In this document: positions 12,043 to 41,773 of the stretch, in pieces
How positions within the stretch are numbered: position 1 is the first letter of the stretch
Layout: the number at the start of each line of letters is the position of its first letter
Source: Ramazzottius varieornatus
Lineage: Eukaryota; Animalia; Tardigrada
DNA: 64,000 nt
NCBI GenBank assembly: GCA_001949185.1
Contig: BDGG01000013.1
Span: forward strand, 496,001-560,000
Direction of reading: 5' to 3'
Made by a program: the position numbers and the translations under genes
Notes under the pieces: model-generated
Seen by the model: only the letters and a program-made list of their open reading frames with translations
What the model was told of the DNA's origin: nothing
Databases searched by the model: none

Positions 12043-12284
12043 AAAGTCTGCGTCAAACTCTGAAAGAGGCACGAGCTACCACTTCGCCACTTCTGTGGCT
12101 TAATAGTATTGAGAGCATCGTAAAGACTTATCATTTCCGTCCGGGGTTGTAGTAGCATCGGCCCTGAGCCCAAGACGGGTCGTTCTTCTGGCAGTGCATG
12201 CCGCCGCAGCAGTTCCCCCGTGACCCGTTGGCGCCTTCATAAGGCTGATCTGCAACATGCGGACAAATGATCAGTTAGAGGAGT
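12043..12284 (-). pseudogene. Inverted orphan duplicate of ICK peptide intron end, exon 2 and 3' UTR
   Basis: Near-identical reverse complement of 13225-13464. Cys2 TGT>TAT (Tyr) and a Q>R change; no exon 1 found upstream. Confidence 0.85.
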
Positions 12285-12919
12285 TATGACACACCCATGG
12301 TTTTGCGGAAGAAGCCGGAGTAAGCTAAGTAGGGCCTGCCCAAACTCTTCTCTTGTGACGTCACTTTTACGTCGACGCAGCTGACTAAGGTCACGTCTAA
12401 TAGTGTGGCCGGCACTGGCTACACGTACCATTTCCCAAACATCATCGACTGCGTATGTCGAACTTTTAGAGGATACTGGAGAAGAACAGAAACAACTCCA
12501 TCCGTGCTGGTGCTTCTTCTGGACGGGACGCTTTCCTCTGGCCAAATTATGTATTGCGAGGTGGTTATTATTACAGCCTTGGTATGATGTACATCACTAC
12601 AAACGTAAACGGCGTCAACGGGCAAAAAGCTACGTACCCGGCCCAAAGTCCACGCGGTGGACGTTTGCTGTGACAGTCAAGTAGGCAGTGGAGTGTGGAA
12701 AGCCCATGCCTGGCTGCACCTGTTTTCGTGCAGTCCTCTTCTGACGTGAAGCCTTTGAGACACAATCTGATAACGGTCCTTCAAACCTTTCCTCTAACCC
12801 TTCATTAGCTTGCTTGGCAGATGTGACGTAAAAACCTATTTATTCCGGTCCTCACGCTGTAATCGATTCTGTTACATGGAAATAACCAGAGATAAACATC
12901 GATCTTCCGCGTTCGGTTA

Positions 12920-12948
12920 CCAATAGGGCAGAATTTCGCGTATAAAAA
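12920..12948 (+). promoter_or_regulatory. CCAAT and TATAAAA boxes upstream of the ICK peptide gene
   Basis: CCAAT at 12920-12924 and TATAAAAA at 12941-12948, ~125 bp before ATG 13071. AATAAA at 13518-13523 downstream of the stop. Confidence 0.55.
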
Positions 12949-13070
12949 GAGCCGCGATGGACGGACAGAAACACATGACCAGTGTCTTATTCGATTTCTT
13001 CCTGACAAGCTTTTCCGTTTACTATTAGTATTCTAAACGCTCGGTCTACCCGTCGTTTCTTTCCGTCAAG

Positions 13071-13376
13071 ATGAAGCTTCTCGCTCTCCTTTTAGTGTGC
13101 TTGGCTGTCAGCAGCTGTTTGGTGGTAGTAGTCCAGGCTTGCCAGGGTCACGGTAAGTTTAGAATTTTAACACCGTACTATACAAGAGTACTGCTTGTAC
13201 TTCGCTGTTCGCCTCAAGTCAACCACTCCTAACTGATCATTTGTCCGTATGTTGCAGATCAGCCTTGTGAAGGCGCCAACGGGTCACAGGGGAACTGCTG
13301 CGGCGGCATGCACTGCCAGAAGAACGACCCGTCTTGGGCTCAGGGCCGATGCTACTACAACCCTGGACGGAAATGA
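13071..13376 (+). CDS. Small secreted inhibitor-cystine-knot (knottin) peptide, 2 exons (13071-13152, 13258-13376)
   Basis: MKLLALLLVCLAVSSCLVVVVQA signal peptide plus CQGHDQPCEGANGSQGNCCGGMHCQKNDPSWAQGRCYYNPGRK. Framework C-x6-C-x9-CC-x4-C-x11-C; GTAAG...TTGCAG phase-1 intron; C-terminal GRK. Absent from the ORF track. Confidence 0.88.
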
Positions 13377-14230
13377 TAAGTCTTTACGATGCTCTCAATA
13401 CTATTAAGCCACAGAAGTGGCGAAGTGGTAGCTCGTGCCTCTTTCAGAGTTTGACGCAGACTTTTGTACAAGCTATTGACTAGATAACAACATCACTTCT
13501 GTCCAATCTCGTGATGCAATAAATTTTCCTGTGTCATGTAGTGTTGATTCGCCGAAACGATTTTACATCTGCGCTAGTTCATACATACCACTCCCAAAAA
13601 CAGGTCAATTTTGCTGTTGTCTATCTTTCGGATCACCCTTACTCGCACGCGCTCCTAACCCTCTGAAAGATTGTCAAGGGCACAGGATTCCAGTAATTCA
13701 TGCTTCAGTGCATCGCCTACTCGATTTACAACTTGGAACGAAACACTCCCGCTATCTCATTCGACTTTTGACTTCCGACTAACTGTTAGCTTATTAGCTG
13801 TAGCAGGTCTTGTAGCAGGTCGTGTAGCAGGACTTCAGGTATGCGAGTCGAAATCGGGTGTTTGAACTGTCACGTCTCGGTGGTAGGACCGCAGCCGAAA
13901 ATATTGATAGTCCCGCAGGACTGCTCAGAATAGAGCTTCTAGTAGACTACTTCATTTTATGCGTCATCGGTAGCCGGATTATCGAATGCACAGTTGCTTG
14001 TCAGGGCCCCGGTTACAATGAAACTTGATCTAATTGGATCTGGTGGCCTGAGGCGGGACGAAGCGCGGAAGTACAGTTCGTCCCATTACTGTTTGTAGAT
14101 CCCAACTCCGTGGGCTCCTATTGGTCGCAAGCCGAGTGCTGTGGCGGGATGTATTGTCGCAAGACAGTGTCCGCGTGGGCCGAAGGCAGATGCTACTACG
14201 GAGCGCCGCACAGCGGACAAGGTTGCCATG

Positions 14231-14606
14231 AGCAAGTCAGCATGGATGTACCGGTAGCCAGCACGGACCTGCCATCCACTGTTATGAACAATCAATCATT
14301 GAGTAACGTGAAATACCGCTTTCGGTTCGATCAAACAACGCACCGTTCGTAAGTGCAACGTGGAACCTATCGTGGTATAGCCTGGCTGTTTTATAGTCAG
14401 TCGTAAAAGCAGGATTTATTTTTTGCGGTCAGACGTTGGCTGGGAAAAGCCCAGGCTAGATCGTTAAAGGATCCACATTACACTTAGAAGCGGTCCGTGG
14501 TTTGATCGAACCCGAAGCGATGTTTTACGTTGCTCAAGGACTGATTGTTGATCATCGTGGATGGCAGGTCCGTATTGGCTACCGGTACATCGATGCTGAT
14601 TTGGCT
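14231..14606. mobile_element. MITE with ~120-bp imperfect TIRs and 3-bp (ATG) target-site duplication
   Basis: Arms 14231-14355 and ~14481-14606 are inverted. ATG at 14228-14230 and 14607-14609. Removal restores the in-frame exon end (GCHGRTH|GT) as in the intact paralog. Confidence 0.85.
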
Positions 14607-14812
14607 ATGGAAGGACCCACGGTAACCAAGACAAACTAGGTGGTACCTATATGAATTTACACGTGTTGTCATTGACCAAGTGCCACTGAAGCTTACTTGA
14701 CCATACAGGTTCATAAGGTGGACTTTCCGAAGGACTTCTTAGCGCAGATCAGTTCAGGCGTACCATGGAAGCCTGTGAATCAAGCTCTCAGCCAGATCAG
14801 TATCCACGAGTA

Positions 14813-15253
14813 CGAGGGAAAAGTTGCAAAAGTTAGCCCGATCGTATAAAGCGTACGAGGTAAACGACATAATTCTGGCATTCTGATTTTCGCACCATAA
14901 TTCGGGCAACGCGAAAAGTTTGAACATTATTGTCAACGCTCGATTCATCTCTCATCGTACGCCTGTTGATACTACATTAGGCTTTTTGACATTGGACAGA
15001 CCCATCCCTCCCCCAGGCCAAATTCCCGTGCTCCACAACGCTTTGTCGTTCTCAAACCTATCGAAAACTCGACAAGAGGGCTCAGTCTACCTCAGGAGAC
15101 AAGAAGCAGTTCATTGCGCGCAGCAAGAGCTGAGAAAAAAATGCCCGAATCATGTCGTTTATCTCGTAGGTCTTTTGATAGCCTACTTCCATTACTGGGT
15201 GGCTAAATTTATAACTCTGGCACCACCCGGCTAACTTTATGACTCTTCCCTCG
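14813..15253. mobile_element. Non-autonomous Tc1/mariner-like element (TA TSD) with a nested MITE
   Basis: TA-CGAGGGAAAAGTTGCAAAAGTTAGCC ... GGCTAACTTTATGACTCTTCCCTCG-TA. Splits CCACGAGTA|CTGAAAGCC of the GH19 exon. Confidence 0.85.
14856..15166. mobile_element. Nested TA-flanked MITE, same family as 36877-37212
   Basis: TA-CGAGGTAAACGACATAATT ... AATCATGTCGTTTATCTCG-TA; internal sequence aligns by eye with 36877-37212. Confidence 0.8.
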
Positions 15254-16247
15254 TACTGAAAGCCATTCAGCTAGCCGGCGTGACCAGCAAGGACGAACTG
15301 GCCATGTTCTTGGCGAATGTCTACCATGAGAGGGCAACACTGCCATACGTGTCCGAACTCAATGCAGAGTCGGGTTACAGCACATAATCCGGTAGTCTCA
15401 CCTATGAAGTGGCGTGGGTATATTCAACTGTTTCATGAGTACAAATATCGCGATGCATCCATCAAGTCAACGGTCTTCCGTGAGCTTGGGGGATATAAAG
15501 TGGAACAATGATTTTCGGATGGACCCTGACCGGTGTAGTTGTTGTTCGGGCATGATGGTACTATGTATATCCATTTAGGTCGCCGACCGAAAGATCGTTC
15601 TCGTTGTTACCTTGGTGTAAAGCGACCTGACCTCACACTTACCGGCAGGTTTTTACACTGGTGCAGAGTGTTGTAAAGCGATGCTTTTGGGTTTCTCTCC
15701 AGCTTTCTTGGTTCGCCTAATATAAATTCAAGCTTCACCGTTACTGTACACCCTTCTCGACAGTGACGCATTATCGAAGTGAGAATTAATTATCACTATA
15801 GTCTGTTTTAAGTCAGTGGCAGTTGCACGGGGAATCACACGTGTTCAGCCAGCTCTAACTGCAACCAGCGTGATTACTATTTAGCCTTTTTCTATCTGAA
15901 TTAAGGTATCTGAGGCAGTGTTATTTTACTAAGCAATTAAAATTATTAAAAGTCACGTGCTAAGGTTAAGTCTACGTGATCAGCTGACTGTAAGTTAAAT
16001 CAATTATCGCTGACGAATTTCAGTTATCAAAATTAAAATTCGATTTCCTATCATGGATCAATCAATCAAGCAGACACCAACCCGCACAATTAAAACGATT
16101 TTAATTATTTAGATCGATTTCCTATTAAAATGATTAAAATAACACTGAATTCTGAGGCCGCACGTGATGTAAATCTAATATGGATGAGAAAACAAGAAAG
16201 CAGCAGAGAGAATGAACAAATTGTGGAAGGCGTCTCGTTTCCAAGCT

Positions 16248-16637
16248 TTAGCAGTCATGCAAGTACCAATCGACAGGTATAACACCGAGGTGCAAGGGGG
16301 CCAGTTTTTTGAAAGCTGCTGGAGAAAGGTCGATGTGCTTCGTCTGGCATCCGGGGCATTTGTCCACAATCCTGACCGTAACAGTGGCACCGCTTTTCCT
16401 AGACGTGACAGTCGCGCACTTTCGGCAGATGGGAGCGTCGTTGGGGTTGGGTAGTTTCCCGTATCTGTCGTAGGTGTCGGGACTGACCGCCGCAACCTTT
16501 TCGCTGTCCGAGTTGAGAAAGCCACAAGCACCGAGGCCGTCGCTCGGGTTGTAGTACGTTGCTTTACCACTTCCGTGTGCGCCTGTAAACACCATCGAGC
16601 TGGCCACGAAACACAGACAAACACGGAGGAAACTCAT
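16248..16637 (-). CDS. Secreted RlpA-like double-psi beta-barrel (expansin/loosenin/barwin-like) protein, intronless, 129 aa
   Basis: Signal peptide MSFLRVCLCFVASSMVFTGAHG, then GKATYY..GLGACG..VAAVS..CRKC..VTVRIVDKCPGC..HIDLSPAAF..LGVIPVDW. Confidence 0.88.
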   Translation of the reverse strand: MSFLRVCLCFVASSMVFTGAHGSGKATYYNPSDGLGACGFLNSDSEKVAAVSPDTYDRYGKLPNPNDAPICRKCATVTSRKSGATVTVRIVDKCPGCQTKHIDLSPAAFKKLAPLHLGVIPVDWYLHDC

Positions 16638-17239
16638 CTTCGTAAAAACCTCAGACTCTCGCAAGGTTCCTATGAGAAAAATGCCGAGCTGTCTGACAGT
16701 GAATGAATGTGTGAAATTTGCTGTTTTTATTCTTCCAATGTTAGTCATATATCGCTTATTGCGTCACAAGCTACTTTATCGATTGATCTCCATGCACTGC
16801 CAGGGCTGTGAGGTTAAACCACGCGCACTACTTGACGCTAGATGTTAAGGAGCGTCTCAACGTGGATAGGGTTCACTAAGAGAAAACGATTCTGATTAAA
16901 TCTTGAATTTCTGGAGGACTGACTCAATCTAGTTCTGAACGCATGAATTTCGCTGGAACTCTGACCGCGTGCATCGATTCCAGGGCTTTTTTACGACACT
17001 TCCAGTCAACAAGTCGCCTCGACTTCGATCGTCTTTTTCGCAGAACACTCCAGTACTAAGAATTGCTTTCCCTAAACACGGCGTGGTTATGTATGATTGA
17101 AACTCAGTTAGCCGCTTGGGCTACTTAAAGGGCACTGCGGTGACAGCACACTACGAAATGCCACAAATCAAACTCTTGTTCTTTCCTTTGAAGGTTATTA
17201 ACAGCAACTCTCACAACTTATCCCTTCTGTCTATCACAA

Positions 17240-18272
17240 ATGAGGCGCTTGGTTGAATCCTTTTTCGTGTTAGCCATCGCCATTCTGATGTTGAAAGACA
17301 CCACAGCTTGTCAGGGTCACGGTAAGTACCATTTCGACCTATGAGTCTTCTTTACTAGACTGAGGACCTCGTGCTGATATAGGTATTATTCGAAACGTTG
17401 CCGGTTTTACAGATCACAACTGCGTGGGCTCGCACGAATCGCAAGCCAACTGCTGTGACGGCCTATATTGCCACAAACCGGTATCCACATGGGCTGAAGG
17501 CAAATGTTACTACGGAATGCCGCACAGCGGGCAGGGTGGCCATCAGAAAACGCACGGTAAATAAGACAAACTGGCTGGTACTCATACGTATGTAACTACG
17601 CGTGTCGTCATTGACCAAATTTTACTAAACTTTACCGGATTATACAGGTTCAGAAGGTGGACTTTCCGGAGGACTTCTTAGCGCGGATCAGTTCAGACGT
17701 ACCATGGAAGCCTGTGAATCAAGCTCGCAGCCGGATCAATATCCACGAGTACTGAAAGCCATTCAGCTAGCCGGTATCACCAGCAAGGAAGAATTGGCCA
17801 TGTTTCTGGCAAATATCTACCATGAGAGCGCGACGTTACGCTACGTGTCTGAACTGAATCCGGAGGCCGGATACTCCGGAGGCGTTGCCTACAAAGGTCG
17901 AGGGTATATTCAACTGACTCATGACTACAATTATCGCGATGCATCCATTGGAATGTATGGCGACGACAGACTGGTCAAGAATCCTGAACTTGTAGAGAAA
18001 GATCTGGATGTCGCGTGGGCAGTCACGGCTTGGTTCTGGAAAGCTAGGGTAAGTCGTCAAGATCTCATCTCATGTTACATTTCTTATGCTGATTGTTACT
18101 GATTGTACTGATTGTTACATTTCTTGTTCTCCAGGTCAAACCCACACTCAATCTGGCGGACTTCGACTCGTCTGTTAAAGCCATCAACAGTAGGGAGCTG
18201 TACGGGTATAGCGAGCAGCTAGCGCGCCGTAAGCGATACCATAGCGCTATCAAGAATATCCTCGTGAGTTGA
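17240..18272 (+). CDS. Secreted ICK-domain + GH19 chitinase/lysozyme-like fusion, 4 exons (17240-17321, 17413-17556, 17648-18048, 18135-18272)
   Basis: Signal peptide, then CQGHDHNCVGSHESQANCCDGLYCHKPVSTWAEGKCYY, then a Gly-rich linker, then ELAMFLANIYHES..VSE..YKGRGYIQLTHDYNY..NPELV..AWFWK..SVKAIN. Canonical splice sites and a continuous frame. Confidence 0.9.
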
Positions 18273-18502
18273 GTAACTACTCACCAGCTTACCACTGCGC
18301 CTGCTGATATCACTTCAGCACACCCCAAAATAGTATTCGATCGAGTGTTTCACCAGCTCCTTGCCTTAATTTCTCCCCTTCTCCCGGGAAGATTTCAGCT
18401 TTGTTATAACCTCTCATTGGATCGATTGTCGACATTTTAATGACTTTCAGATTTCAAGCAGCCCTAATAAATGTAACTGATATCGAAAGTTAATCTTGCC
18501 CA

Positions 18503-19487
18503 CTATTCATCTTCCCAAATAACACATTCTTCCTCATCGGCTTTTGCAGGTGCCATCATATCAATGACTTTTAAACTGGGTACCGCCTCTTGGGTAACTG
18601 GCACCACCAACAAGGGGACGACTTTTTCCATATTAATGGCTCTCTGCGGGTGCGAATTCATCTGCACAACTCCAATCTTCATTTTGGACTCGGCTTCCTG
18701 CGCATTCGATTCCTCGATGGCCGGTGCGGTATCTTCCATGCTGGCCAGCTTCAGCCTGGGCACTTCCTGCTTGGAGAGATGTATGGTCGGTCTGGGCACT
18801 GTCCGCTGAGGTGTGGTGGTCAATTCCTTCTCGTTTCTCGTTGTCGAATCAGGTTGTCTGTAGTAGAAGACGGTTGCTGACGCCGTCTTCTTCGTCCGTA
18901 TGTGGGTCGACTTCTTTGCTATTACTGTCGTCGTTGTGGTAGATGGCGTGGTTGTCTCGTCGACCGGCCCTGCCTCCTCGGCAGCGTCTTCAGGCTCGTC
19001 GGAGCCTTCATCCGCTACTGGTTCTTCGGTCGTGGTGGTGCTGGTAGTCGCGCTGGGAGTAGCGGTGGCGTCATCGTAAAACTCGGTCAGACCGTCGATG
19101 ACGGAACAACGAACCTTACGCTTGTAATTGCAGGCTTTGATATAGACATCGTATACCATGTTACCGGGACAAACCTTTTCCGTATACATGCCATCTTTGC
19201 ACTGGAAAGACAAAGGGTAAACTTTTACCTCAGTACAGAATCGATCTGCTGGGAAATGTTACCTGCAGGTAGGAATTGCAGGACATGGGATGACGAAACT
19301 CTCCGTCGCCAATCTGACATATTTCTCGTAACAGCAGTTCCGACTCTTTCAGCTGACGTCGGTACCGTTGGTGAGCGGAGAGATTTTGATCGCCTTCTTG
19401 AAATGGCAATGGCGACGATATGACAGATCCAAGAGACACCAATAGCGACAACAGACGGAGAGAGCACTGCACAGTCGAGACTTCCAT
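18503..19487 (-). CDS. Secreted chitin-binding type-2 (CBM14/peritrophin-A) protein with Thr-rich mucin tail, 2 exons (19263-19487, 18503-19201)
   Basis: Signal peptide, RYRR furin-like site, CQIGDGEFRHPMSCNSYLQCKDGMYTEKVCPGNMVYDVYIKACNYKRKVRC six-Cys domain, and TTSTTTTEEP-type tracts. Confidence 0.85.
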
Positions 19488-40708: not shown

Positions 40709-41773
40709 TCATGAACTGCTAGATGTCCACGTCTTGATCGAGCCGCTATGTACAGGAAATAAAGTCACAGTTCCCACAATGAGTCGTGTTTCCTGGTCAA
40801 ACTTTGCTGCGACCTTCCATCTTGCTTCGCGGGCGAGAACCCGGATCGAAGGCGGCATTGTATTGTCCTTGGAACTGCGTGGCTCCGTTGACTTGCACCG
40901 GGATATCGTAGTGTGAAACATTGTGGATGGAATAGGGAGTTATCAGACGTGGCTCGGAGAGGAGGATAGTTTTCTTGGCTCGGAATAGCCGACTGAAAGA
41001 GAACGGATACCGTGTGTGAAAAATCGGGCTAAAATATGGAAAATACGGCCCTTCAAAATTTCAAGCCTGGAGCTTCACCGGAGCGACTTTAAAAATGAAC
41101 TCTAGCGCGATGGAAGTCTTTGTTCTAAACCCGCGCAGCCGAAATTATTCATCAGTTTCCTACCTGGCTCTTGTAATCAGGCATACAATGGCAAGCGTCA
41201 AGGCGATCGCAGCAACCAGTGGCAATATGATGGCAGCCGGTAACCAGTCCTTTAAAATCCAAGAACAAAATTAGCAACGGGCAAACGAGAGCAAAAATCC
41301 GACGAAAGCTCAGGCGGACCTACAGGGTTGTAACTAGTGGGATAGAACGTTTGCTGGTCGATCAGCGGGCTGTTTTGGAAATTTCCTCCGAAGTTGGGGT
41401 CGCCGTTGAAATTATTATACGCTGGATTACGGTTCAGGTCGTCGATGGCTGCCTGAAAGCGTTGACGGTTGGGATCCACTGCGTCCATCAGGATGTCCGA
41501 GTTGGTCGTGCTACTATCGGAAGTAAAATTGTCGAAGAAGGCCTTCGTAATATTTGTCCAAGAGTAATCGCTTGTTGCGTTCTGAACAGAAGCCTCCGTG
41601 GCGTTGTTTGGAAAGAACACATCGGTGGATGTGTCGTTCTGCCAAGGGAACTCGTTGGTGAAGTTAGCAGAGTCACTCGGCATCCATGAGACGTTTGAAA
41701 TTAGCTCGGATGGCGCTGACAGCGTACTTTCATTAGCGTTTGAGAGCTCTCCTAAACTGGCAGGATAATCCAT
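40709..41773 (-). CDS. Putative single-pass membrane protein with S/T/N-rich glycosylated ectodomain, unknown family
   Basis: Many NxS/T sites in 41310-41773 and a hydrophobic exon DWLPAAIILPLVAAIALTLAIVCLITRAR at ~41164-41250. The last exon is uncertain. Confidence 0.45.

Follow-up and report, generated by a model that had tools for sequence, protein, structure and literature searches.

INTRODUCTION

The glycoside hydrolases of family 19 (GH19) carry accessory modules that largely define their classes: plant enzymes have CBM18, bacterial ones have CBM5/12 and CBM13, and others have LysM or peptidoglycan-binding modules. In the most recent survey of the whole family, which comprises both chitinases and endolysins, no known CBM was seen on metazoan, fungal, or oomycete GH19 groups (PMC8547705). 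The Ramazzottius varieornatus gene RvY_16177, located in the window analyzed here (the whole 64,000-nucleotide stretch of DNA), encodes an animal GH19 that does bear an accessory module, of a kind that no profile library recognizes.

Plant class I and class IV chitinases resemble the RvY_16177 product in their arrangement of a signal peptide, a small disulfide-rich N-terminal module, a Gly/Pro-rich hinge, and a GH19 domain, and they share with it the catalytic Glu-Glu-Ser/Thr set. Hevein-type peptides also occur free, as antifungal peptides, and the knottin family to which the RvY_16177 module belongs likewise exists as free peptides. The RvY_16177 module, however, has six Cys in knottin rather than hevein spacing, its host is an animal, and its GH19 domain is shorter (~170 aa) and lacks the loop-3 disulfide and G190/G192. 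The RvY_16177 fusion arose independently of the plant hevein-GH19 proteins. Fungal CBM1, a small cystine-stabilized module that binds cellulose or chitin, is a further parallel, in that a disulfide-rich mini-domain of ~35 residues is connected to a glycoside hydrolase through a flexible linker, rich in Ser, Thr, and Gly in the fungal enzymes; the two modules have no sequence relationship, and they differ in Cys pattern, kingdom, and catalytic families.

The module itself is comparable to Alo-3 of Acrocinus longimanus (PDB 1Q3J) and the tachystatins of horseshoe crabs, which also have six Cys with a central CC; the motif NGSQGNCC...C.K.P.W..G.C is common to Alo-3 and the stand-alone R. varieornatus knottin RvY_16174. 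Unlike the RvY_16177 module, these are free peptides, and we know of no Alo-3 or tachystatin-type peptide fused to an enzyme. Alo-3 and tachystatin are reported to be antifungal, and tachystatin A to bind chitin (PMC2853521).

The GH19 domain resembles that of L001, a paralogue at the C6 locus of R. varieornatus, and that of Paramacrobiotus metropolitanus XP_055344395.1 ("muramidase-2-like"), to which it is 73-74% and 56-62% identical, respectively, varying by stretch. The L001-type paralogue departs from the chitinase signature in the same ways, but its accessory module is a C-terminal LysM (CBM50) instead of an N-terminal knottin. No signal peptide is evident in the L001 open reading frame as read; that of the fusion came with the knottin gene. 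Our literature search found no description of a tardigrade knottin-GH19 fusion and no work on tardigrade GH19, GH19-knottin, or cystine-knot family 19 chitinases; for Ramazzottius chitinase it found no title or abstract on this gene, and it found no related tardigrade knottin paper.

RESULTS AND DISCUSSION

RvY_16177 is an expressed four-exon gene

RvY_16177 consists of four exons on the + strand (17240-17321, 17413-17556, 17648-18048, and 18135-18272), a model that matches GenBank GAV06146.1 exactly (254 aa, "hypothetical protein," database record P0001). Exons were searched singly, and full-length protein searches were made via the GAV06146.1 database record. The features of the locus are as follows.

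13071 to 13376, + strand: stand-alone knottin gene RvY_16174, 66 aa (exon 1, 13071-13152; exon 2, 13258-13376)
13930 to 15462, + strand: decayed, truncated tandem knottin-GH19 copy (pseudogene); blastn identity of 77-83% in three blocks
17190 to 17239, + strand: 5' untranslated region, with the transcription start near 17190; the X3 contig begins right after the template-switch oligo
17240 to 17321, + strand: coding sequence of exon 1, 82 nt; signal peptide MRRLVESFFVLAIAILMLKDTTA, then Cys1 in CQGH
17322 to 17412, + strand: intron 1, 91 nt, GT..AG, phase 1; spliced out of contigs X3 and X8
17413 to 17556, + strand: exon 2, 144 nt, symmetric phase 1-1; Cys2 to Cys6 (C31, C41, C42, C47, and C59)
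17557 to 17647, + strand: intron 2, the fusion junction, 91 nt, GT..AG, phase 1; skipped in the X3, X8, and X9 contigs (three studies)
17648 to 18048, + strand: exon 3, 401 nt; encodes the Gly/Ser linker GSEGGLSGG followed by the first two thirds of GH19
18049 to 18134, + strand: intron 3, 86 nt, GT..AG, phase 0; skipped in contigs of all four runs
18135 to 18272, + strand: coding sequence of exon 4; C-terminal part of GH19 (…FDSSVKAINSRE…RRKRYHSAIKNILVS), TGA stop, without LysM repeats
18273 to 18488, + strand: 3' untranslated region; AATAAA at 18466-18471 and poly(A) at 18488, where the X3 and X9 contigs end

In assembled cDNA contigs, the joints 17321/17413, 17556/17648, and 18048/18135 are all GT..AG. 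Studies P2 and P3 provide all three of them, P4 the last two, and P1 the last only. Splicing of exon 2 to exon 3, on which the two-module reading of the initial annotation depended, is thus seen in the cDNA contigs of three independent studies. The 1078-nt X3 contig (record 12) carries a SMART template-switch oligo at 17190 and runs into an A stretch at 18488, and the reading frame is open over every joint. RvY_16177 is a genuine, expressed, and selectively maintained gene, and its product is a secreted two-module protein.

Exon 1 comprises 27 codons and 1 base, ends in ACQGH, and is followed by a GTAAGT donor, making the intron phase 1. Exon 2 also contains the start of a His/Gly/Gln-rich linker of ~20 residues, and in the AlphaFold2 (AF2) model the linker (residues 62 to 80) has a pLDDT of <55, which fits a flexible tether. 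An intronless gene of fungal or bacterial type encoding a DPBB protein adjoins RvY_16177 at 16248-16637.

The N-terminal module belongs to a resident knottin family

The Cys residues of the N-terminal module are arranged as C24-x6-C31-x9-C41C42-x4-C47-x11-C59, within the six-Cys knottin (inhibitor cystine knot, ICK) pattern C-x(3-7)-C-x(3-10)-CC-x(1-4)-C-x(4-13)-C. In knottins, the disulfides connect Cys I-IV, II-V, and III-VI, the third bridge passing through the ring. A six-frame scan of the 64-kb window found the exact spacing C-x6-C-x9-CC-x4-C-x11-C at two places only, RvY_16177 and the gene at 13071, while a looser Cys pattern gave two further, unrelated chance matches, at 40787 and 19471. 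The initial annotation had claimed this identity of spacing, together with a common 27-codon first exon ending in CQGH before a phase-1 intron and a main knottin exon flanked by two phase-1 introns, and each of these points holds: exon 1 of RvY_16174 is also 82 nt long, ends in ACQGH before a phase-1 intron, and aligns to exon 1 of RvY_16177 without gaps, and exon 2 of the fusion is symmetric (1-1). RvY_16174 is spliced in cDNA, with its transcription start at 12973 and poly(A) at 13536. The N-terminal module is a diverged paralogue of the neighboring knottin RvY_16174, which is likely a representative of the family that donated exons 1 and 2. The stand-alone gene lies ~4 kb from the fusion and has far more cDNA contig depth, a quantity that does not rank genes.

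Five other copies of the knottin exon in R. varieornatus, two of which are apparently decayed, show 42-67% identity to the fused one. A profile search with an alignment of six knottin exons as the query found members of this Alo-3-like family in Hypsibius exemplaris, bdelloid rotifers, the nematode Panagrolaimus, and a gall wasp; the fused knottin exon alone gave no candidate in an index of 5.8 billion proteins. The best PDB match of stand-alone RvY_16174 was Alo-3 (1Q3J), at a marginal E value of 0.013, and the fused knottin alone had no significant match in PDB or Pfam, its PDB matches being chance ones such as West Nile virus NS1 (E value, 0.47).

The stand-alone peptides of the family are small and secreted and carry C-terminal Gly-Lys/Arg amidation signals. 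The fused knottin lacks the NPG(K/R)K amidation signal, having the linker in place of NPGRK and a stop codon, and it departs from the highly conserved family consensus at NGSQG (HESQA) and QKNDPS (HKPVST). It is a diverged, neofunctionalized member of the family. No upstream DNA similarity between the fusion gene and RvY_16174 was found by blastn, and a TATAAAA ~30 nt before the start is obvious only in the stand-alone gene.

Structure prediction had been suggested as a check by the initial annotation. In the full-length AF2 model, residues 21 to 60 have a pLDDT of 87-91, with strands at 45-48 and 57-61. A model of the RvY_16174 type superposes along its whole length on psalmotoxin, tachystatin B, hainantoxin, and asteropsins over 33-39 residues with a root mean square deviation of 2-3 Å; these ICK matches are weak (Z of 2-3; Foldseek E of >0.3), as is usual for peptides of ~35 residues. 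Weak fold matches obtained with the knottin model include the CBM1 structure 7yhf. Residues 22 to 64 have look-alikes in the ESM Atlas, with scores of <0.8, in spider-toxin families, and their structural neighbors are generic small Cys-rich modules; both are leads only. The module does not correspond to a known CBM already common on GH19s: it had no Pfam hit, no match to hevein (CBM18, PF00187) or any other CBM even at E values of up to 10, and an hhalign probability of 1.2% against the hevein modules of two environmental GH19s.

The GH19 domain is minimal, and chitin is its most likely substrate

Exon 3 alone matches PF00182 (9e-10; 39.2 bits, compared with 35 bits for the whole protein and a cut-off of 25.5) and the GH19 chitinases of the PDB (5e-14 and below), while no NCBIfam family was matched by exons 3 and 4. 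The hmmscan match to PF00182 covers profile positions 104 to 159 only; the PDB chitinases align over residues 120 to 248. The initial annotation had described a Gly-rich linker leading to a GH19 domain with the Glu of HES and a second Glu retained, and this description proved correct. Exon 3 encodes E135 (in YHES), E144 (in SELNP), and Q164, T166, Y169, and N170 (in IQLTHDYN), all of which align with their counterparts in the solved chitinases BcChi-A, spruce class IV chitinase, and ChiC. The roles of the corresponding GH19 catalytic and subsite residues (the acid and base Glu, the water-holding Ser/Thr, and the Gln, Tyr, and Asn of subsites -1/+1) have been described (PMC8547705). In the AF2 model, residues 85 to 254 have a pLDDT of 83-98, and Foldseek matched this model with a probability of 1.0 to >40 GH19 structures, with target-normalized TM-scores of up to 0.77. 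The domain has the bilobal alpha-helical fold of the family and is a minimal ("loopless") GH19 with the full catalytic set, in which E135 would act as the acid, E144 as the base, and T166 as the water holder. Comparison of RvY_16177 with L001 gave a saturated pS of 0.82 and a dN of 0.21, and the GH19 half is under strong purifying selection.

The chitinase (CHIT) signature of the GH19 Engineering Database (GH19ED) consists of C97, C105, F/L/W151, G190, G192, and F/Y/L222 in rye numbering (PMC8547705). An alignment to 3hbd showed four of the six residues to be missing, C97 and C105 being deleted with loop 3 and G190 and G192 being replaced by Asp (DFD); position 222 is Ile, and only position 151 (W) fits. 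Loss of loop 3 has been tied to low affinity for chitin oligomers (PMC8547705). Failure of the signature does not, however, exclude chitinase activity, since one characterized fungal GH19 chitinase lacks most of it (PMC8547705). The endolysin (ELYS) criterion combines I33, R109, G118, and L/Y173 (SPN1S numbering) with phage or bacterial origin; the origin of the RvY_16177 GH19 is eukaryotic, with introns.

Taken with the history described below, we consider it probable that RvY_16177 encodes an exon-shuffled, secreted knottin-GH19 protein in which the knottin is a targeting arm, with chitin as the likeliest target. After secretion, the knottin would act as a targeting or wall-binding module, perhaps being antifungal or membrane active itself, and would hold the tethered GH19 domain on a surface of GlcNAc polymer, where the domain, as an inverting GH19 enzyme, would cut beta-1,4 glycosidic bonds. 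The knottin would then replace the LysM repeats that do the same job in the parent gene, in parallel with hevein and CBM1. The target is most likely fungal or other chitin, attacked for defense or digestion, and the main alternative target is peptidoglycan.

An antibacterial, lysozyme-type muramidase, with a GH19 domain that cuts peptidoglycan and a knottin that is antimicrobial or targeting, is the alternative that deserves the most weight, although we regard it as rather unlikely. The domain matches the phage endolysin profile phrog_181 at 5.5e-26 and 92.7 bits, compared with the 35-39 bits of Pfam GH19, and because endolysin profiles outscore the chitinase-centered Pfam model, a peptidoglycan substrate is a live option. 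Absence of the loop-3 disulfide and of G190/G192 points the same way, as does the highest target-normalized TM-score (0.77), which belongs to the PWe2 endolysin; the family itself includes endolysins (PMC8547705). Sequence comparison, on the other hand, ranks chitinases first among the solved relatives, with spruce class IV, moss BcChi-A, and Streptomyces ChiC at 8e-15 to 1e-11 and the SPN1S endolysin at 6.5e-11. The parent paralogue has LysM, and its P. metropolitanus orthologue was automatically named "muramidase-2-like," but LysM binds chitin as well as peptidoglycan, and the knottin family resembles the antifungal Alo-3. In the GH19ED, the chitinase subfamily includes the metazoan and fungal groups, and the fungal chitinase without most of the signature also weighs against a muramidase (PMC8547705).

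Alternatively, the knottin could be the actual product, freed from a precursor by proteolysis for antimicrobial or signaling use, with GH19 as a carrier or pro-domain. The stand-alone members are indeed small secreted peptides with amidation signals, and the predicted disorder of the linker would leave it accessible to proteases. We consider this very unlikely: the fused copy lacks the NPG(K/R)K processing signal, and its linker contains no dibasic site; the GH19 half has kept all catalytic residues, with a dN of 0.21 against saturated synonymous sites; and a much more represented stand-alone knottin gene is available 4 kb away.

Should the knottin of RvY_16177 prove to bind chitin or cell walls, a new CBM family would be established, and the probable targeting role would make the knottin a clear case of an antimicrobial-type peptide turned into an enzyme targeting domain. 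The gene is relevant to tardigrade innate immunity or digestion, of which little is known so far, and a compact knottin-GH19 protein of ~230 aa could serve as a scaffold for antifungal or lytic enzymes.

The fusion arose by exon shuffling within the genome

The GH19 half of RvY_16177 is 73-74% identical at the amino acid level to the resident paralogue L001, which encodes GH19 and four LysM repeats, and exon 3 is 72% identical at the nucleotide level. Both genes have a phase-0 intron at one position, after WFWKAR, with the donor context TGGAAAGC.(A/C)GG before GTAA in common, and the protein alignment extends past the linker into the Gly/Ser-rich N terminus of L001. In the tree, the tardigrade GH19 clade that includes RvY_16177 has a support of 100/89.5, and the sister pairing of RvY_16177 with L001 has a support of 96/61. 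The RvY_16177 domain groups with tardigrade, rotifer, and fungal GH19s, and its nearest nontardigrade relatives (rotifer, metagenome, fungal, and insect) are 40-52% identical. No LysM remnant was seen in the 3' untranslated region of RvY_16177 by blastn or in the open reading frame listing.

Exon shuffling inside the genome produced the fusion. The local knottin gene family contributed exons 1 and 2, and it has in common with RvY_16177 the 82-nt exon encoding the signal peptide and CQGH and the phase-1 intron; the knottin exon shed its amidation signal and stop codon and acquired a phase-1 donor. The GH19 side is a duplicate of the resident gene for GH19 and four LysM repeats, in which the phase-0 intron was kept and the LysM repeats were lost. 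After joining, the fusion was duplicated in tandem, and one copy decayed. That copy, the pseudogene at 13930-15462, has lost its start codon (ATG to ATA), its donor (GTAAGT to GTTACA), and Cys2 (to Ser), contains an in-frame TAA, is interrupted by insertions at 14236-14614 and 14814-15252, and lacks exon 4. Between the knottin exons of the fusion and the pseudogene, dS is 0.83 and dN/dS is 0.23. The fusion is old: its synonymous sites have reached saturation, and a tandem duplicate of it has already decayed. With a phase 1-1 exon, a neighboring donor family, an acceptor paralogue, and a fossil copy, this history of exon shuffling is unusually well documented.

The initial annotation had proposed that a resident knottin gene captured a foreign GH19. 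The first half of that proposal stands, in that a resident knottin family fused to a GH19 and supplied the signal peptide and exon 1; the second, that the GH19 was foreign at the time of fusion, is not supported, the GH19 half having an intron-sharing resident paralogue, L001, of 73-74% identity. A recent horizontal capture, in which a bacterial or fungal GH19 landed beside the knottin gene, would accord with the rare and patchy distribution of GH19 in animals (tardigrades, rotifers, mosquitoes, and few other insects), with Kickxellomycotina fungi as the nearest named nonanimal relatives, and with the DPBB gene next door. It is nevertheless disfavored, and we hold it to be highly improbable: the immediate relative is the intron-sharing paralogue in the same genome, several GH19 paralogues occur in three tardigrade genera, the synonymous sites are saturated, and GC content is flat over the locus. 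A search with a 14-row alignment as the query found no closer donor among bacteria, the best aligned segments being 25-49% identical, or 27-38% when at least 120 query residues were covered. The genome has a history of controversy over horizontal transfer, and exon shuffling within it corrects a tempting reading of that kind. Gene-prediction chimeras are common in draft genomes, but an annotation or assembly artifact, whether from merged neighbors or meaningless read-through, was rejected as extremely improbable because exact GT..AG joints between exons 2 and 3 are present in the cDNA contigs of three independent studies, a contig is bounded by the template-switch oligo and poly(A), the frame is open through the joints, and the old tandem copy keeps the same exon order.

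Six-Cys modules were probably joined to GH19 more than once in tardigrades

The architecture that the initial annotation called unusual is present in RvY_16177, but it is not unique to it, since two other tardigrades, H. exemplaris and P. metropolitanus, have proteins in which a signal peptide and a six-Cys module precede a GH19 domain of another clade. H. exemplaris OQV15013.1 ("putative Chitinase 6"), P. metropolitanus XP_055350779.1, and LOC129601429 resemble RvY_16177 in having a C-C-CC-C-C module, a low-complexity linker, and a GH19 domain, with Cys1 right after the cleavage site. They differ from it in Cys spacing (x6, x5-6, x4, and x9-10), and their module shows weak profile similarity (39%) to the Alo-3-like family. 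A single clade for all six-Cys-plus-GH19 proteins of tardigrades was rejected (delta lnL, 127), and the Hypsibius and Paramacrobiotus fusions are probably an independent join. Different six-Cys modules on different GH19 clades imply that the join arose at least twice in tardigrades, where this solution recurs. We tentatively suggest, as a possibility that falls short of an even chance, that the knottin represents a new, animal-specific family of chitin- or cell-wall-binding modules that was recruited at least twice onto GH19, in convergence with hevein and, in RvY_16177, in exchange for LysM. Three tardigrade genera each have several GH19 paralogues, and the transcript P0020 may represent a third independent knottin-GH19 case.

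Architecture of the RvY_16177 protein

Translation of the third exon retrieved GAV06146.1 at 100% identity, a 254-aa "hypothetical protein" (RvY_16177; UniProt A0A1D1VYW9) whose sequence is exactly that of the four-exon model in the initial annotation.

Exons of the fusion gene (window coordinates)
17240-17321: exon 1, 82 nt, MRRLVESFFVLAIAILMLKDTTA-CQGH, donor GTAAGT, phase 1
17413-17556: exon 2, 144 nt, phase 1 on both flanks
17648-18048: exon 3, 401 nt, followed by a phase-0 intron
18135-18272: exon 4, 138 nt, with TGA at its end

The protein joins a module with the knottin Cys pattern, through a disordered tether, to a GH19 fold whose catalytic set is intact; it is an animal accessory-module GH19 enzyme whose knottin-type module had not been recognised. 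In the full-length AF2 model (mean pLDDT, 87), the knottin scored 87-91 and the GH19 domain 83-98, while residues 62-80 (pLDDT <55) are predicted to be a flexible linker. Foldseek assigned a probability of 1.0 to over 40 GH19 structures. The GH19 half matched Pfam PF00182 above the cut-off and solved GH19 chitinases at 8e-15 to 1e-11 (spruce class IV, moss BcChi-A, and Streptomyces ChiC). Alignment to the solved chitinases placed E135 (YHES) as the catalytic acid and E144 (SELNP) as the base, with Q164, T166, Y169, and N170 on the conserved IQ(L/I)(S/T)xxYN.

The GH19 domain is very short (~170 aa). Loop 3, including the Cys97-Cys105 bridge, is deleted, and Gly190 and Gly192 are both replaced by Asp. 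When the PDB was searched with exon 3, the top match was 7f88, an engineered loop-3-less chitinase. The domain thus lacks the signature by which the GH19 Engineering Database (GH19ED; PMC8547705) defines the chitinase subfamily, and the phage endolysin profile phrog_181 (5.5e-26) scored above Pfam's GH19 model; the substrate may therefore be either chitin or peptidoglycan. A muramidase is unlikely on balance, though these two observations earn it serious consideration. We lean towards chitin: the domain's best matches by sequence are chitinases, the GH19 groups of eukaryotes are assigned to the chitinase side of the family, and the module joined to it is similar to an antifungal peptide.

A resident knottin family

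The six cysteines of the fused module (C24, C31, C41, C42, C47, and C59; spacing x6, x9, 0, x4, x11) are spaced identically to those of a stand-alone gene at 13071 (RvY_16174, P0217, 66 aa). Both genes have an 82-nt first exon ending in ACQGH and a phase-1 intron, and their exon-1 alignment is gapless. In cDNA contigs the stand-alone gene starts at 12973, is spliced at 13152/13258, and has its poly(A) at 13536. The initial annotation had proposed that a resident knottin gene supplied the signal peptide; this neighbouring gene, and the exon-1 structure common to both genes, bear this out.

A genome-wide search of R. varieornatus found nine knottin-exon matches, four of them in the window (the fusion, the stand-alone gene, and the first two copies listed below), one ~113 kb away, and four on another contig.

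Further knottin copies (window coordinates, or G000 for the R. varieornatus genome)
12146-12235: minus strand, RvY_16173 (P0219), inverted copy of the stand-alone knottin exon, Cys2 to Tyr
13930-15462: plus strand, pseudogene, decayed tandem copy of the whole knottin-GH19 gene, absent from the initial annotation
G000 C13:621883-621978: minus strand, L007, knottin exon ~113 kb downstream on the same contig, peptide identical to that of the stand-alone gene
G000 C14:284723-284809 and 321600-321686: L009 and L010, knottins of the same family, …CQGDNCCGGMYCQKNDLSWAEGRCYY…

RvY_16173, annotated as 62 aa without a signal peptide, is probably a pseudogene or a mis-modelled gene, and L007 either arose by recent duplication or is duplicated in the assembly alone. 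At L009 and L010 one open frame runs from the knottin into a further Cys-rich region without a Pfam match; here shuffling may have placed the module in another type of protein.

A profile of the knottin exons revealed a strikingly conserved peptide family (consensus C.GHD..C.G.NGSQG.CCGGMHCQKNDPSWA.GRCYYNPGK), with members in Hypsibius exemplaris, the bdelloid rotifers Adineta and Rotaria, the nematode Panagrolaimus davidi, and the gall wasp Belonocnema. The mature core (CCGGMHCQKNDPSWA.GRCYYNPGK) is near-identical among the family proteins P0217-P0232, and over the entire precursor, including the signal peptide, members share 43-77% identity with the R. varieornatus stand-alone knottin. The distribution is patchy and centred on moss-dwelling, desiccation-tolerant meiofauna. 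Extreme constraint or transfer between animals might account for this pattern.

The fused knottin is a diverged member (42-67% identity to other copies) and alone gave no significant match in the PDB or Pfam. For the stand-alone knottin, the only noteworthy match among PDB sequences was Alo-3 (1Q3J; E=0.013), the antifungal knottin of the beetle Acrocinus, with which it shares NGSQGNCC. The family's AF2 model, with a mean pLDDT of 85, matched mostly ICK peptides, including spider toxins, asteropsins, Alo-3, and chitin-binding tachystatins, as well as other small Cys-rich domains (IGFBP-type, colipase); full-length superpositions had an rmsd of 2-3 A with weak scores (Foldseek E >0.3, Z 2-3). 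The model thus fits a knottin fold without proving it. Within this fold class, antifungal activity has been published for Alo-3 and tachystatin, and chitin binding for tachystatin A (PMC2853521).

The fusion gene encodes a secreted-type precursor, with the hydrophobic N-terminus and Ala-Cys junction common to all family members. It lacks the NPG(K/R)K amidation/stop signal and has GMPHSGQGGHQKTH and a new phase-1 donor in its place. Given the replaced signal and the retained catalytic residues, we regard a precursor whose real product is the peptide as improbable.

Origin of the catalytic half

Three GH19 loci were found in the R. varieornatus genome, including the following two.

G000 C6:744123-747293: minus strand, L001, GH19 then four LysM, without a signal peptide in the ORF read
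C6:1078459-1081611: L003, signal peptide directly before a GH19 of the other tardigrade clade

Fusion exon 3 shares 73-74% protein identity and 72% DNA identity with the GH19 part of L001, both genes have a phase-0 intron at exactly the same position after WFWKAR, and the protein alignment extends through the linker (SEGGLSGGLLSADQF in the fusion, SGSGTMSTLISPEQF in L001). In an ML tree, RvY_16177, L001, and two P. metropolitanus GH19(-LysM) proteins formed one clade (support, 100/89.5), with RvY_16177 and L001 as sisters (96/61). The nearest GH19s outside tardigrades (rotifers, metagenomes, mosquitoes, and Kickxellomycotina fungi) were 40-52% identical, and the best bacterial or archaeal matches among 185,579 genomes, from Nocardia and Myxococcota, 25-49% (27-38% over at least 120 residues). 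Taken together, the identity, intron, linker, tree, and distance of these outside matches argue that the immediate source was a resident intron-bearing paralogue, not foreign DNA. The initial interpretation of a foreign GH19 joining at the fusion event therefore falls, and a recent foreign capture is highly improbable. The fusion itself, a knottin donor resident in the genome, the supply of the signal peptide by that donor, and a module distinct from hevein all stand. The window, from the tardigrade Ramazzottius varieornatus, is eukaryotic and flat in composition (48% GC). A P. metropolitanus isoform, P0012 (793 aa), joins a kinase-like region to GH19.

In the fusion, the knottin would serve as a substrate-targeting module in place of the parent gene's LysM repeats, would hold the enzyme on a GlcNAc-polymer surface, and might contribute antifungal activity of its own. 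Candidate physiological roles are defence against fungi, food-wall digestion, or cuticle turnover.

Age and constraint

Comparison of the fusion with L001 gives saturation at synonymous sites (pS, 0.82) and a dN of 0.21. The tandem pseudogene has ATA for ATG and the donor GTTACA in exon 1, Ser for Cys2 in the knottin exon, and a TAA in frame near the beginning of exon 3; it carries two insertions and lacks exon 4. Against the live copy, its knottin exon has a dS of 0.83 and dN/dS of 0.23. The fusion is therefore older than an old duplication, and it has evolved under constraint. The pseudogene insertion at 14236-14614 contains an inverted duplication. At 14770-15143, cDNA contigs of two studies (X1, X8) lie on the insertion within the pseudogene and continue into unrelated sequence, possibly marking a repeat or mobile element that is transcribed.

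Transcription of the locus

Twenty public R. varieornatus runs were transcriptome-like, with 0.24-0.43 of the sampled words from a 5.6-kb stretch present. Contigs from four runs (0.34-0.43), one from each of four studies (P1-P4), were mapped onto 12900-18500. The fusion joints 17321/17413, 17556/17648, and 18048/18135, every one GT..AG, were all recovered: all three in P2 and P3, the last two in P4, and the last only in P1. Exons 2 and 3 are thus spliced together, as the initial annotation supposed, in contigs from three studies. One 1078-nt contig spans 17190 to 18488: a SMART template-switch oligo directly precedes its first genomic base, and it closes with a poly(A) run placed 17 nt downstream of AATAAA (18466-18471). 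The sequence features, the identity to GAV06146.1, and these cDNA joints confirm the knottin-GH19 fusion and make an artefact scarcely conceivable.

Neighbouring genes
16248-16637: minus strand, intronless secreted DPBB/barwin-like (expansin-like) gene, PF03330 4e-14
18503-19213: minus strand, Thr/Ser/Pro-rich ORF, convergent neighbour of the fusion, with a partial peritrophin-A chitin-binding domain (CBM14, PF01607 1e-4) at its start

The DPBB gene sits between the pseudogene and the live fusion gene, and cDNA contigs over 15914-16700 show the oligo and poly(T) marks that transcription of the minus strand would leave.

Recurrence of the architecture

Five of 216 fetched GH19 relatives have a signal peptide, immediately followed by a C-C-CC-C-C module and a low-complexity linker: RvY_16177, two P. 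metropolitanus proteins, H. exemplaris OQV15013.1 ("putative Chitinase 6"), and the transcript P0020. True hevein modules occurred in two environmental sequences among the 216. The other tardigrade fusions fall in a different GH19 clade from RvY_16177, and forcing all four tardigrade fusions into one clade, a constraint group defined after tree inspection, cost 127 log-likelihood units (AU p ~3e-126). Their N-modules differ in Cys spacing and have weak profile similarity to the Alo-3-like family (39%), whereas that of P0020 is similar (94%) and hevein modules are not (1.2%), which sets the N-module apart from hevein. No Pfam CBM matched any of these N-modules, and GH19ED records metazoan, fungal, and oomycete GH19 groups without a known CBM (PMC8547705); the module is therefore not a known CBM common on GH19s. 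In the literature library searched, no paper combined "GH19" with "knottin". The design of a 6-Cys N-module on GH19 is not unique to RvY_16177: it recurs in tardigrades, and public annotations already contain it without recognising it. The transcript P0043 (311 aa) encodes a GH19 protein whose N-terminus carries a different Cys-rich module twice (…C.S..G.C….C…….GKCP……CC…), another unrecognised accessory module on a eukaryotic GH19.
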